From positions 1-64,000 of IMG/VR virus record IMGVR_UViG_3300046694_000296: DNA of 64,000 nt; one strand, written 5' to 3'. The position numbers and the translations under genes were made by a program. Below, piece after piece: positions 17,369 through 61,119 of the stretch; the stretch's first letter is position 1; each line of letters starts with the position of its first letter. The notes under the pieces were generated by a model that saw only the letters and a program-made list of their open reading frames with translations, was not told the DNA's origin and ran no database searches.

Positions 17369-17438
17369 TTAGATTGCCGGTAAGTAACCCGTGAGTTACA
17401 ATCGGAGAGATAACAGTCTCTCCGACAAGGGTTCCTGC

Positions 17439-20400
17439 ATGGCACAGCTCAAGCAAGTCTGCACCGTCACCAACGGCTCGCAGACGGTAACGGTGATCGG
17501 CGTGAATGTCGCCTACCGCATTCGCGCCAACAATATTTTCATGGTGTCGCCGGACCTCGTGCCCTACACGGTGGCCCAGGACGCAACCTTCGACGGCACG
17601 AACACGGTCGTCCAGCTCACGGGTGCCTATCAGGGTGCAACCGGCGCGATGGCGCAGGGCGCGTTCGTCACCGACTTCACGTCGCCGGACAATATTCCGC
17701 TGATCTCGCAGGGCGACGTCGGCACGGCTGCGGTCTGGACGAAGGCGATGTATCAGCTGCAGGACATGATCGGCAGCGTCACGCCGGCCGGCCTCACGGC
17801 CTTCATCGCCCAGATCAACGCCACGCAGGCGGCCGCGACCGCATCCCAAGCCGCCGCGCTCGCCAGCCAGAACGCGGCGAAGACCAGCGAAACGAATTCG
17901 AAGACGAGCGAAACGAACTCGGCCACTAGCAAGACGGCAGCACTCGCGTCGCAAAATGCCGCGAAGACGAGCGAAACGAATTCGAAGACCAGCGAAACGA
18001 ACAGCGCCGCATCGGCCACCGCATCGGCGACGAGCGCAACGGCATCGGCTAATAGCGCGACGGCCTCGGCCGCCTCAAAGACGGCGGCCGCCACCAGCGA
18101 GGCAAATTCCTCGAGTTCGGCCGCCGCTGCCCTTGCTTCGAAAAACGCCGCCGCGACCAGCGAGACGAATAGCGCCGCGTCGGCCGCAGCGTCGCTCGCC
18201 AGCAAGAATGCCGCGGCGACCAGCGAAGCAAACGCCAAGACCAGCGAAACCAACGCGAAGACAAGCGAGACAAACGCCGCTTCCAGCAAGACGGCGGCGG
18301 CTGGCTCGGCCACGGCAGCGGCAAGTTCGGCGACGGCAGCCGCCGGCTCGGCAACCTCGGCCGCGGCTGACCGCGCGACGGTGCAGGGCATCCTGACGAC
18401 CATGAATGCCCTCTATCTGGGCAACAAGGCGACGGCGCCCACGCTCGACAACAGCGGTAACCCGCTCGTGCAGGGCGCGGAATACTTCGACACGACCAAG
18501 CAGCTGCTCCGCGTCTACACCAGCACCGGCTGGAAAGACTACGACGCGGACGCCCAGACTCAGGCGGTGAATGCGACCGCCAGCGCGTCGGCTGCCGCCG
18601 GTAGCGCCTCTGGAGCCGCAACTTCCGCCGCGAACGCCCATACGAGCGAGGTGAATGCTGCGGCTTCCGCCGCAGCCGCGCTCGTCTCGCAAAATGCGGC
18701 AAAGACCAGCGAGACGAATTCGAAGACCTCGGAAACCAATTCGAAGACCTCCGAGACGAATTCGAAGACCAGCGAAACGAACTCCAAGGCCAGCGAAAAT
18801 GCGGCCGCAGCCAGCGCCGCGCACGCCGACCAGGTGGCCTCCACGATCGGCAATCCAGTGTCGAAGAACGGCGACACGATGGCGGGCGACCTGTGGGTGG
18901 GCGACCCGGCATCGACGAGCGGCAAGACGCTTGGCACGAACTACCGGATGGGTATTGCGCGCAATTCGCCCGGCAACTACCCATATGCGGTGATTGCCAA
19001 CGGCACACTGACTGTCGCGTCTCCGCCGGCGTCGCAAACGACGATCGGGAGCTTTTCGTTCCGATGGGCCTCGACGACCTCCGACGTTCTCGCGGGCCAG
19101 GGCGCGGCCGATGTCTATGGCTATGCGAACGCGGACGGCTCGGGCGATCTCGGCCTCTTTGCGCGCAACGCGGCAGGCTCGATCACGGGACAGTTTCGCG
19201 TGCTCGGCAATGGGCGTGTTCTCGTCGGCACCAGCACCGACAACGGCGCCGACAAGTTCCAGGTAAACGGCACGATCCGCGGGGTCGCCTCGACCGGTGC
19301 GCTGCGCGCATCGAACGGCAGCGGCACAGGGCAGACCGGCATTTTCGTGAAGCGCGAGGACGCGCCGGCCGATGAGAAGACGTGGGAAATCCTGCACGCG
19401 TCCTCGGGCAACTTCGTCATCCGCTCGATGAACGACGCCTACTCGGCATCGCAGAATGCGCTCGTGGTCACGCGTCCGACCGGCGGCGGCATCGGCATCA
19501 CGACGATGCAACTGATGACTGGCGGCGGGCGTGTGCTGGTCGGCACCTCGACCGACGACGGCGCGACCTTGTTGCAAGTGGCGGGCACCGCCAAGGCAAC
19601 CGGCAGCATCACGACCGGCGGCGCATTCAACGTCGATGGCGCGGCAGGCGCGGGTCGCTCGATGTATTTCAAGACGGCGGGCTCGAACCGCTGGGAGCTG
19701 ACTACATCCTCGACGGCGGAAGGCGGCAGCAACGCTGGCTCGAACTTGCTGCTCAACCGCTACGACGACACCGGCACCTGGATCGACTCGCCGTTCTCCA
19801 TCACGCGCTCGACGGGCGTGCTCGCGCTTTCGCAACGCCCGACCTTTGGCGGCTACACGCCGTGGGATAGCGGCAACGTCACGCCGTTCGACAAGGCACT
19901 CGGCGGCACCATCTCGGCCGCCACCTTTATCGACGCGACGCCGAGCGCGACGACGGCACAACTGAACGTGCGCGGCGCGTCGGGCGCGATCAGCCGGGAA
20001 GGGAAGATCCGACTTTCGGGCACCTTTGGCTCGGGCACCGATCTGGGCACACGTATGGTCGCCTCGCTGCGCGCGGGCTTCAACGGCGGGACGTGGGGCA
20101 AGGAATACCTCGACTTTTACCTGAACTCAGCATCGAACGATGCCGCGAGCGACGCAAACCAGGCCCTTGTCATGCGCCTGACGTATGGCGGTCGCGTGCT
20201 GATCGGCACGGCGACGGACGACGGCGCCAATAAGCTGCAGGTGACCGGCGGGGCAAACGTCGTGGGCACCGCGCTGCTCGGCGCGGGAACGATTCGTGCC
20301 GCGATTAGCTCGGACTCATCGAGCGCGCTTTTCTATTCGACCGGGAATGCATACGTCGGCTCGAACGGCACGGGCTACCTCGCGCTTGTCTCCGGCAACG

Positions 20401-21821
20401 TCGAAGGCGCGCGCCTGACAGCGGCCGGCCGCATGCTGATCGGCACGCAGACCGACGACAACACGAACACGCTGCAAGTGGCTGGCACCGGGTTGTTCAA
20501 GGATTTCGTGCTCGTCAACGGTGTCGCGTCCTCGTATAAGGGCATGAAGCTCACATCGGCTGGCGTCGCGCGATGGACGGTGGGCGCGAACCAGACGACC
20601 GAGACTGCCAACGCGGGCGCCGACTTCAGCATCGACCGCTATAACGACGCCGGAGTGTGGCAAAGCGCGCCGATCCAAATCACACGCTCGACCGGCTTGG
20701 TAGGGATCAATAACGGGCTGACTGTTTATTCCGGCAGCTCAACTTTCGCCGGCTCGGTGTTCGCATCGGGCGGCGTGATCGAGCTTGGCTCGATGAGCTC
20801 CACGATGACGCCGTTCATCGACTTCCACAGCTCGGGCACCGGCAGCGACTACGACGGGCGGATCATCGCGACCGGCGGTAGCTCGACGTCGGGCAATGCC
20901 TCTATGACGTATTACGGTGCGCTCCACTCGTTCAATGGCGGCGTCCAACTGAACAACATCGGGCAGACCACCTACAGCAGCGCCATCAAGCTCAATGCCA
21001 ACGGCTACGCGCCGTTCATCCGTTCGAACAGCGTGTCGCAGAACCTGGAAGTCGTCAACAACGCCAACACGGCGTTGAACTTCTGGGTCAACGATACCGG
21101 GGCGATCGGTTCTCGCGCTGGCTTTACCGCCAACGGGCTGATCACTGCCAACGGCGGGCTTCAGAACTACGGCACGCTGTATGTGATGAATCAGGCCAGC
21201 ATCCAGCTTCACACGACTAACTACTCGGCGTTTTTACGGGCCGATCCGAGCGGGCAAATCGGGTTCATCAACCAAGCCCAGAACAACTGGAACCTTCAGC
21301 TAACTGACGCGGGCGCCCTCACAGTGCGCGGGATCATCAATGCGAACGGCGCGCAGGCAATGACGTGGTCGGGGGCCTACCTCGGCGCGGGCGGTGCATC
21401 CGGGCCTGGACAGAGCGCAACGTGGAACTTCGGCATCAACTGCGGGCAGGCGGGCCTCGCCAATGCGTGGGTCGCGAACTCGGACCGCCGCCTGAAAACG
21501 GACATCGTGGATGTAGCGGAGGAAGAGGCGCTCGACTTCATCACGAAGCTCGCGCCGAAGCACTACGTGAAAGAGGGCCGCCCCGAGTATGGCTTCATCG
21601 CGCAGGACGTCCTGCGCGCCAAGGGTGAACACGGCAACCACGTCGTCGCCTTAGTCCCCCGTGAGGACATGTTTGAGGAAGACGAGGGTGACGGCCTCGT
21701 GTCGCCAGCAGGAGGCATGTATGCGATCGCGCATGACCAGTTCCACCCGTTCACCGTCAAGGTCCTGCACAACCTGCTGCGCCGCGTAGCAGAACTTGAA
21801 GCAAAGCTGGAGAGAAGATGA
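17439..21821 (+). CDS. Long side tail fibre with C-terminal intramolecular chaperone (peptidase S74-like)
   Basis: Stf-like AKTSETN repeats; four GRVL[VI]GTxTD..QV modules; 'SDRRLKTDI...YGFIAQDV' and terminal coiled coil. Confidence 0.88.
17870..18800 (+). repeat. Coding 21-bp-period repeats ([14 protein letters not shown] heptads) in tail fibre shaft
   Basis: Repeated AAGACCAGCGAAACGAA(T/C)TC variants with synonymous divergence. Confidence 0.8.
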
Positions 21822-60370: not shown

Positions 60371-60381
60371 AGGAAAAGAAC

Positions 60382-60987
60382 ATGAAACTGAAGATAGTTG
60401 GACTCGATCCGTCTTTGACCCACACGGGCATCGCGATCATGGAATACGACACGATCACGGGCACGCTCGGCACGCCGGAGCTGCGCCTGATCGTGACCGA
60501 GGGGCAGGGCAAGAAGAAGGTGGTGCGCCAGAACTCGGATGACGTGCGTCGCGTGCGTGAAATCGTCAAGGGTGTGCATGACGCCTGCAATGGCGCGCTC
60601 TTCGCCGTCTCTGAGATGCCCACGGGCGCGCAGAGTTCGCGCGCTGCGTTCGCGTTCGGCATGGTGATCGGCGTGCTCGCCGGCTTGCCGGTGCCCATGA
60701 TTCAGGTCAGCCCGCTCGAAGTGAAGCTGGCAGCGGTCGGGCACAAACAGGCCGCGAAGGAAGAAATGATTGAGTGGGCACACCAGAAGTATCCGGCGGC
60801 GAACTGGCTGCGTCACGAGAAGAACGGTCGCGTCAAAACCAAGCTCGGCTTCAAGGAATGGAAGGCGGGCGATTTGGTGAACGACAACGAGCACCTGGCC
60901 GATGCCATCGCGGTCGCCGAAGCCGGGTTGCTCACCGACCAGTTCAAGCAGGCGGTGGCGATGCTGTCCTTCGCGAAGGCAGCTTAG
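60382..60987 (+). CDS. ruvC: RuvC-like Holliday junction resolvase
   Basis: 'IVGLDPSLTHTG', 'E', 'P.EVK....G...A.KEEM', 'ADAIAVA'. Confidence 0.88.
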   Translation: MKLKIVGLDPSLTHTGIAIMEYDTITGTLGTPELRLIVTEGQGKKKVVRQNSDDVRRVREIVKGVHDACNGALFAVSEMPTGAQSSRAAFAFGMVIGVLAGLPVPMIQVSPLEVKLAAVGHKQAAKEEMIEWAHQKYPAANWLRHEKNGRVKTKLGFKEWKAGDLVNDNEHLADAIAVAEAGLLTDQFKQAVAMLSFAKAA

Positions 60988-61119
60988 TCCCGGAAGCGGG
61001 CAGCCAACCTATACTGAAGAGGGAAGGGGTCGCGAGCAGCGGCTTATTTTTTGGCTTTGCTGTAGAGTAACCACTGACTTACAATCCATTCCCCCTCCGA
61101 ACGAACCCGAGAAACATAC

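Follow-up and report, generated by a model that had tools for sequence, protein, structure and literature searches.

The 64,000-nucleotide stretch analysed here (the window, positions 1 to 64,000 of IMG/VR record IMGVR_UViG_3300046694_000296) carries some 23 copies of an 18-bp dyad, 19 of them good and about four weak. The full element reads TAAGT(A/C)AC-NN-GT(T/G)ACTTA, i.e. TAAGTNAC-NN-GTNACTTA, and it is probably the multi-copy operator of a global lysogeny repressor, the candidate being a 139-amino acid (aa) protein of the XRE type encoded at 40676-41095. Judged from its sequence, the genetic element bearing the dyads is a siphovirus phage-plasmid of the SSU5/RHEph10 kind. An initial annotation had noticed the palindrome at several -10 hexamers and had read it as a possible promoter element resembling the late promoters of P1.

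The window is the first 64 kb of a record of 215,656 bp, which consists of two strain genomes (~107-109 kb) head to tail, as if the assembler had circled a two-strain graph twice. Genome A (1-108,902) and genome B (the remainder) are colinear, ~71-89% identical depending on the segment, and joined through an identical 127-bp word that doubles as the reported "terminal repeat"; window positions 1-127 recur exactly at 108,903 and at the end of the record. Genome B also occurs on its own, as an independent 105-kb contig (G001). A third relative, G002 (G2 hereafter), is 106 kb long, and in all dyad comparisons "the three genomes" are A, B and G2. Coordinates refer to the window (positions 1-64,000 of the record) unless marked as genome coordinates.

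An 18-bp dyad at promoters and between genes

With up to three mismatches allowed, each of the three genomes contains 36 dyad sites, for a chance expectation of 0.55, and 66 of the 72 sites in the whole record are intergenic. At two mismatches or fewer, G001 and G002 hold 23 and 22 sites, and a reversed control pattern gave none. Two further genomes with matches in an exact-pattern scan (G003 and G004) proved to be unrelated AT-rich phages with chance matches, and were set aside. The motif is kept at orthologous places in 29 of 32 cases between A and B and in 25 of 31 between A and G2. Identity at the specified positions of the dyad is 91% (A-B) and 87% (A-G2); the corresponding values for its degenerate N positions are 77% and 54%, and the flanks reach 71-81%. 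The bias toward the left arm is only mild: the site is symmetric and does not follow orientation.

Seven copies in the window lie at the upstream edge of a -10 hexamer, and a degenerate pair flanks a TTGACG:

28168-28188, plus strand: dyad 28168-28185 fused to TATACT 28183-28188 (class I-a), upstream of a 150-aa open reading frame (ORF) and the DnaB-like helicase operon
31518-31538, plus strand: dyad and TATACT (class I-a), upstream of ORF 31569-32045 and the ligase operon
50668-50688, plus strand: dyad and TATACT (class I-a), upstream of the gp32-like single-stranded DNA-binding protein (SSB) gene 50744-51826
55714-55734, plus strand: dyad and TATACT (class I-a; TATAAT in G2), upstream of 55789-56337 and the SbcD/SbcC genes
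17374-17402, plus strand: partial -35 TTGCCG 17374-17379, dyad 17381-17398 filling the 17-bp spacer, TACAAT 17397-17402 (class I-b), upstream of the tail-fibre gene
61064-61085, plus strand: dyad and TACAAT (class I-b), upstream of the ribonucleotide reductase (RNR) gene 61120-63393
23395-23419, plus strand: perfect dyad 23395-23412, 1 nt, then TATAAT 23414-23419 (class I-c)
43990-44035, plus strand: degenerate dyads 43990-44007 and 44018-44035 flanking TTGACG 44005-44010, upstream of the CobS-like AAA gene

The geometry described in the initial annotation was borne out, and all eight positions that it quoted are correct. At 28183, 31533, 50683 and 55729 the right arm GTTAC runs directly into TATACT, which starts at dyad position 16; at 17397 and 61080, GTGAGT or CTGACT runs into TACAAT, which starts at position 17; and TATAAT at 23414 comes just after its dyad, with a measured gap of 1 nt (2 bp had been given) and a start at position 20. 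The TTGACG at 44005 does overlap a dyad copy, the degenerate one at 43990-44007. Setting the hexamer as -12 to -7, we placed the dyad centre at -18.5 at the TATACT sites and at -19.5 at the TACAAT sites, close to the -19 proposed, and at -22.5 at the 23414 site. The lack of a -35 at the TATACT sites also held, the best match at spacers of 16-19 bp being 2-3 of 6 bases, which is the random expectation for this genome; both TACAAT sites have a TTGC-type partial -35 at exactly 17 bp, with the dyad filling the spacer. The sites listed in that annotation are thus real, but they are only seven of the ~23 copies in the window, and fusion is one arrangement among several. Its half-site, AAGTTAC, has to be relaxed: the exact heptamer occurs only three times in the window, because its fifth base coincides with a degenerate dyad position (mostly A or C), while the left half-site AAGTNAC is present.

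The site at 28168 retains motif and hexamer in B and G2 while its degenerate positions vary. At 17381, 55714, 61064 and 66011 (the last a genome coordinate), the TATACT or TACAAT of A and B becomes TATAAT in G2, and by this comparison the hexamers behave as sigma-70 -10 boxes. Modules of the form CTATACT, equally devoid of a -35, also stand without an upstream dyad, at 27419, 54170, 61010, 66003 (a genome coordinate) and elsewhere, so the missing -35 is a trait of the promoters of this phage and is not something for which the dyad compensates. Three of these modules are:

27418-27424, plus strand: CTATACT with no upstream dyad and a degenerate dyad after it
54169-54175, plus strand: stand-alone CTATACT, no dyad, conserved in B and G2
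61009-61015, plus strand: stand-alone CTATACT, 50 nt upstream of the dyad at 61064

The C preceding TATA fits the rhizobial -10 consensus, CTATAT. The missing -35 may also relate to a sigma-70-family protein that the phage encodes at 45326-45964. Two other readings of these promoters were rejected. The string ..ACTATA.. resembles CACTATAG of promoters for a T7-type single-subunit polymerase; no unassigned ORF is large enough for such an enzyme and the hexamer drifts to TATAAT in G2. A PF00940 profile search for a T7-type polymerase gave no match, but its control was silent too. Taking the half-site as the -35 of an extracytoplasmic function (ECF) sigma factor puts the spacing wrong, with no conserved element 16-17 bp downstream.

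Some features of the predicted 5' leaders are worth recording. Stable hairpins follow directly after two fused promoters, at 17403-17424 and 28196-28212; the former has a fold energy of -16.5 kcal/mol (stretch 17398-17440), and in genome B a G-C pair becomes A-T, a compensatory change by which the stem stays paired. Two dyad/-10 modules have the same 11-mer, CACCTGTAGCG, after them (44037-44047 and 55737-55747), and these copies may represent duplicated promoter cassettes or a further signal.

Beyond the fused sites, the dyad occupies a variety of registers. We defined a strong -10-like hexamer as TAnnnT with at least 5 of 6 matches to TATAAT (background 3.4e-4 per position), and found one near 21 of the 36 sites of genome A. 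The hexamer starts at dyad position 16 in six sites, at position 17 in two, and at positions 20, 24, 26 and 38 in one each; in seven others it lies upstream of the dyad (start -8 to -4; gap -1 to +3 nt). Where the dyad directly follows the -10 hexamer its centre is at about +1.5 to +5.5, and overall the centres range from ~-40 to ~+5.5 relative to the start, all inside the polymerase footprint. For instance, the dyads at genome coordinates 66011, 68877, 70028 and 78191 all come after (C)ACTATACT, the one at genome coordinate 104001 lies over the -35 of TTTACA-17-TATAGT, and the one at genome coordinate 101099 abuts an ATG. At 32728, 45307, 4613 and 101099 (again a genome coordinate) promoter space or hexamer is absent. 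The copies of these kinds in the window include:

4012-4059, plus strand: canonical TTGACT-18-TATAGT (4036-4041) with dyad 4042-4059 at once after it (class II, ~-6 to +12), upstream of the Ig-domain tail gene
10850-10876, plus strand: TAAAAT 10850-10855, 3 nt, then dyad 10859-10876 (class II), conserved in the three genomes
777-794: perfect dyad after the stop codon of the major-capsid gene and before a strong terminator hairpin (808-839)
4613-4630: dyad separating tail genes, with a GC hairpin after it and no evident -10
11134-11151: dyad ahead of the gpJ-like gene, 2 nt after a weak hexamer
23819-23836: dyad in a short intergenic gap
32728-32745: dyad across the stop of 32030-32734 and the ligase ATG (32738), no promoter space
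45307-45964, plus strand: dyad 45307-45324 abutting the ATG of the sigma-70-family gene (sigma2 and sigma4) 45326-45964
55250-55267: dyad ahead of the cell-wall hydrolase gene, followed after 6 nt by TACAAT

A conserved GCGTAAAAT stands between the 777 dyad and the terminator hairpin (window 795-839), where the stretch 800-845 folds at -22.5 kcal/mol, and the same string precedes the 10859 dyad.

The candidate repressor and its relatives

The densest cluster of dyads (four to five, at 41111, 41146, 41281 and 41293) lies between two divergent genes, the XRE gene and a small ORF:

40676-41095, minus strand: XRE-type helix-turn-helix (HTH) protein of 139 aa, candidate dyad-binding lysogeny repressor
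41111-41183, minus strand: leader of the repressor gene, with TATAAT 41178-41183 and after it dyads 41146-41163 (weak) and 41111-41128
41274-41310, plus strand: promoter of the orf79-cobT-cobS-sigma-dnaE operon, with TACAAT 41274-41279, 1 nt, and the overlapping dyads 41281-41298 and 41293-41310
41338-41577, plus strand: conserved small ORF of 79 aa (orf79), divergent from the repressor gene and heading the cobT-cobS-sigma-dnaE operon

The presence of dyads in the leader of the XRE gene itself implies autoregulation. The 139-aa protein matches families of phage transcriptional regulators and repressors, and its homologs are named "XRE-family HTH" in the sources. In its structural model (predicted local distance difference test, pLDDT, 85), a domain of five helices can be superposed on P22 c2, 434 Cro, ImmR and DdrO, and a helical C-terminal part resembles the SaPI repressor Stl; the controller proteins C.Esp1396I and C.BclI are also among the fold matches. 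Compared as sequences with solved structures, neither the repressor nor the sigma factor gave anything significant. With CYRAN_45 of the phage-plasmid Cyrano, the 139-aa protein shares 40% identity over the DNA-binding domain (E 2e-18) and the same synteny. CYRAN_45 carries the annotation of a putative repressor, and in a lysogen its expression exceeds the prophage background 10-fold (PMC9928086).

Repressor homologs and dyad arrays occur together in the clade of the window, in Cyrano and in RHEph10. In the metagenomic relatives L073-L075 the homolog lies opposite a small ORF-cobT-cobS-sigma-dnaE operon, adjoining an integrase, and the same dyad family is present, immunity region included. RHEph10 (JX483881) has a homolog that is 31% identical and a dyad of its own, GTCAaTCAATATTGAtTGAC, in ~30 copies, mostly directly after a -10-like hexamer. 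SSU5 (JQ965645) and Cyrano share the dyad TARGTAAGTnCTTACYTA, whose outer TAAGT..ACTTA is that of the window; it gives 13 exact and 33 loose matches, against 2-8 in shuffled sequences, and mostly follows an A/T-rich hexamer. Cyrano carries the repressor homolog and SSU5 does not: a tblastn search with the 139-aa protein found no match in SSU5, which lacks the whole integrase-repressor segment and yet retains 13 dyads or more. The published description of SSU5 calls it virulent (PMC5427195). A virulent phage that keeps the dyads without the repressor indicates that the homologous protein is dispensable for lytic transcription from dyad-bearing promoters. Pseudomonas phage nickie has neither a repressor homolog nor a repeated motif, immunity module or plasmid module; BUCTxx99 likewise has no repressor homolog, and the window-type 18-bp dyad, the only motif examined there, is absent. 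We found no description of the multi-copy dyads of RHEph10, SSU5 and Cyrano in the literature searched.

One of the metagenomic contigs, L073 (128.6 kb), has the same repressor-cobT-sigma-dnaE layout and an integrase, and is flanked by ordinary bacterial genes, from which it follows that this phage group includes members that integrate and do not live as plasmids.

As to the protein encoded by 45326-45964, it has 212 aa with sigma2- and sigma4-like parts and a weak match to PF04542, and the PDB fold matches of its model are all sigma factors. The gene at the equivalent position in RHEph10 is annotated as a sigma factor, and a sigma-70-family gene is kept between cobS and dnaE in RHEph10 and the metagenomic relatives. 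In nickie and BUCTxx99 the ORF at this position has no assigned function and is only distantly alignable.

The mechanism that we propose is as follows. The centres of the two half-sites are ~9-10 bp apart, which places both on the same face of the DNA, and an XRE dimer could bind with one helix-turn-helix per half-site. Once bound, it would exclude RNA polymerase by occluding the -10, the start or the -35: a dyad fused at its downstream end to a -10 hexamer would cover ~-27 to -10, one directly downstream of the hexamer ~-6 to +14, and at promoters of a more canonical build others would fill the spacer or lie over the -35. Copies placed between genes or abutting start codons may be roadblocks of the stoperator type. 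As long as the prophage is kept as a plasmid, all lytic transcription units would be silenced and the repressor gene would limit itself, while the operator-free rep/par/toxin module would stay on. Upon derepression the -10-only promoters would fire, possibly needing the phage sigma factor made from the first derepressed operon.

Known systems and alternative explanations

The description of P1 late promoters on which the initial annotation relied was accurate. Those annotated in NC_005856, which we extracted, lack a -35 and have the sequence AAGT[G/T]ACTT-N4-TAnAAT. The late promoters of P1 number 11, their 9-bp inverted repeat is the Lpa site, and Lpa is needed (PMC10695390). The promoters of the window share with them the -10 hexamer without a -35 and an inverted repeat containing AAGTNAC about two turns upstream of the start, the left half-site lying at -26 to -20 here and at -25 to -19 in P1, 1-2 bp apart. 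The P1 box, however, is 9 bp long, sits near -22 and is 4 bp from the hexamer, whereas here the element is a dyad of 18 bp, made up of two half-sites, whose right arm extends 2-3 bp into the hexamer. Searches for an Lpa homolog by protein comparison, with the phrog_1704 profile (with a positive E. coli control) and with tblastn found none in the genome or in any relative. And while the P1 promoters serve late operons, the fused TATACT sites precede genes for DnaB, the gp32-like SSB, SbcCD and a helicase. The proposed P1-late architecture thus survives as a likeness of layout, in the missing -35 and the near coincidence of AAGTNAC with the P1 box, and fails in box structure, Lpa and late-gene targets.

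Other known systems resemble the proposed network in different respects. The C1 operators of P1 also belong to a plasmid prophage and lie at or over the promoters of many lytic units and in the repressor's own region, but they are asymmetric and 17 bp long, C1 shows no relationship at the sequence level, P1 governs its late operons by way of Lpa, and, unlike the C1 operators, the dyad described here also precedes structural genes. In mycobacteriophage L5 and its relatives of cluster A, one repressor uses more than 20 dispersed sites, at promoters and in short intergenic spaces and often touching stop or start codons, and the prophage is silenced globally (PMC9283540). The dispersal of the dyads over promoters and short intergenic spaces, in contact with stop and start codons, matches this arrangement. 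The L5 sites are nevertheless 13 bp long, asymmetric, orientation-dependent and bound by a two-domain monomer, whereas here the site is an 18-bp dyad, the small XRE candidate is expected to be a dimer, the host is Gram-negative and roadblocking is only putative. With lambdoid immunity regions (P22 c2, 434) the window shares an XRE-type domain, a repressor divergent from a lytic operon with several dyads in between, and implied autoregulation; lambdoid operators are confined to the immunity region, whereas ~36 dyads are scattered across this genome, and the divergent small ORF is not a recognisable Cro.

These comparisons bear on the alternatives. The view of the initial annotation that the dyad is a positive element replacing the -35, here with host polymerase and a phage activator analogous to Lpa acting near -22/-19, draws on the -35-less promoters of P1 and on the position of AAGTNAC within 1-2 bp of the P1 box. 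It is unlikely: besides the lack of an Lpa homolog, the overlap with the hexamer and the replication genes downstream, where late genes would be looked for, the same dyad is found after hexamers, over a -35, at start codons and ahead of the repressor's own coding sequence. An element replacing the -35 could not work from any of these positions, and most dyad copies are in registers where activation is implausible. Somewhat less improbable, though still doubtful, is the fallback of that annotation, a dual regulator which represses at or after the -10 and at its own gene and activates the -35-less fused promoters, as do MerR, the C-proteins and lambda CI at PRM. The fused geometry is identical at six promoters per genome and conserved in the three genomes, these promoters lack a -35, and two of the fold matches of the candidate, C.Esp1396I and C.BclI, both activate and repress. 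The right half-site, however, shares 2-3 bp with the hexamer, precisely where sigma region 2 must bind; the CTATACT module is also found without an upstream dyad; SSU5 grows lytically without the homologous protein; and the TATACT sites have neither the suboptimally long spacer nor the -35 of MerR-type promoters.

It is very improbable that the dyad, or its GTNAC half-site, is a promoter element read by the phage sigma factor. The sigma-70-family gene is present and syntenically conserved, the promoters lack a host-type -35, and GTNACTT resembles the -35 boxes of ECF factors; yet the gap from half-site to hexamer is 0 or 7 bp where sigma4-sigma2 geometry needs ~16-17 bp, sigma recognition has no need of dyad symmetry, and dyads and gene do not go together (Cyrano and SSU5 have dyads but no cobS-dnaE sigma gene, and nickie has the syntenic gene but no dyads). 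An inverted repeat between genes, sometimes overlapping stop or start codons, could also form a hairpin in RNA or single-stranded DNA and serve as a terminator, a processing site or a translational operator, a role that we find hardly credible. In most copies no more than 4-6 of the 8 arm pairs are complementary. Positions 6 and 13 of the arms show no covariation and are paired at 32% of sites, where chance predicts 41%; a hairpin would have a loop of 2 nt and lacks a T-run after it. The missing covariation and the incomplete arms mean that hairpin formation is not what is conserved; conservation tracks base identity, and selection, as far as aligned genomes reveal it, is on the sequence of the dyad and not on its pairing.

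Several observations weigh against a global repressor. No -10 can be recognised near ~15 of the 36 sites, whose function is guessed. The identical dyad/-10 fusion at six -35-less promoters per genome would also suit an activator or a dual regulator of the MerR or C-protein kind. Co-occurrence of repressor and dyads amounts to ~3 independent lineages, in which both are co-inherited with the rest of the genome. The gene is missing from SSU5, hence the lack of a tblastn match there, and another conserved protein could be the true binder. Except in P1 and the mycobacteriophages of cluster A, it is unusual for a repressor to control structural-gene operons directly. Finally, none of the RNA runs searched for the phage contains it, its occurrence being limited to DNA metagenomes. 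Even so, we regard control by the 139-aa XRE protein as probable. A more elaborate version, in which one XRE dimer acting on ~36 dyads per genome has two outputs, -10 occlusion and an elongation stop at promoter-less copies, and so forms a symmetric, Gram-negative counterpart of the stoperator system, is rather speculative; such a dimer might also help the phage sigma factor at the six fused promoters.

The phage-plasmid and the meaning of the proposed network

The genome has siphovirus tail and head genes and a replication block with DnaB, primase, ligase, CobT/CobS-like proteins, PolIII alpha, gp32-like SSB, RecA, SbcCD and RNR. Its closest cultured relatives are RHEph10-like phages of Rhizobium, Stenotrophomonas phages, Pseudomonas phage nickie and phage-plasmids of the SSU5/Cyrano type, to whose PolIII alpha its own is 36-46% identical. 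The DNA runs that contain the phage are rhizosphere metagenomes. PolIII alpha (46610-49954) has a C-terminal domain of the uracil-DNA-glycosylase superfamily (residues 962-1071), and the same domain is found in PolIII alpha of L073-L075 and in the annotation of RHEph10. The module for plasmid maintenance is free of dyads:

34886-40254, minus strand: plasmid-maintenance module with ParE toxin, Rep3 initiator, ribbon-helix-helix (RHH) protein and ParA, dyad-free, inside an 8.4-kb gap (32746-41110)

At its edge lies the ParE-family toxin gene (34886-35203), with a likely antitoxin ORF just upstream on the minus strand. Upstream of parA, positions 40318-40372 hold three direct GGTATCAA repeats and partial inverted copies, which are probably a partition site or par operator unrelated to the dyad.

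Phage-plasmids of the SSU5 type have a wide distribution that extends from Enterobacteria, in which they are able to bear resistance genes, to bacteria of the rhizosphere, and we found no description of their lysis-lysogeny control in the literature searched. The analogy with P1 late promoters is tempting but unsupported, and is corrected here. Being recognisable across the genome, the dyads offer a way to predict the promoters of these phages, and they point to a candidate immunity determinant and to immunity groups with dyads of the TAAGTNAC, TAAGTAAG and GTCAATCAAT types. If the proposal is true, ~100 kb of phage genes would be switched by a single small protein through a single 18-bp site, which would provide a simple experimental handle.

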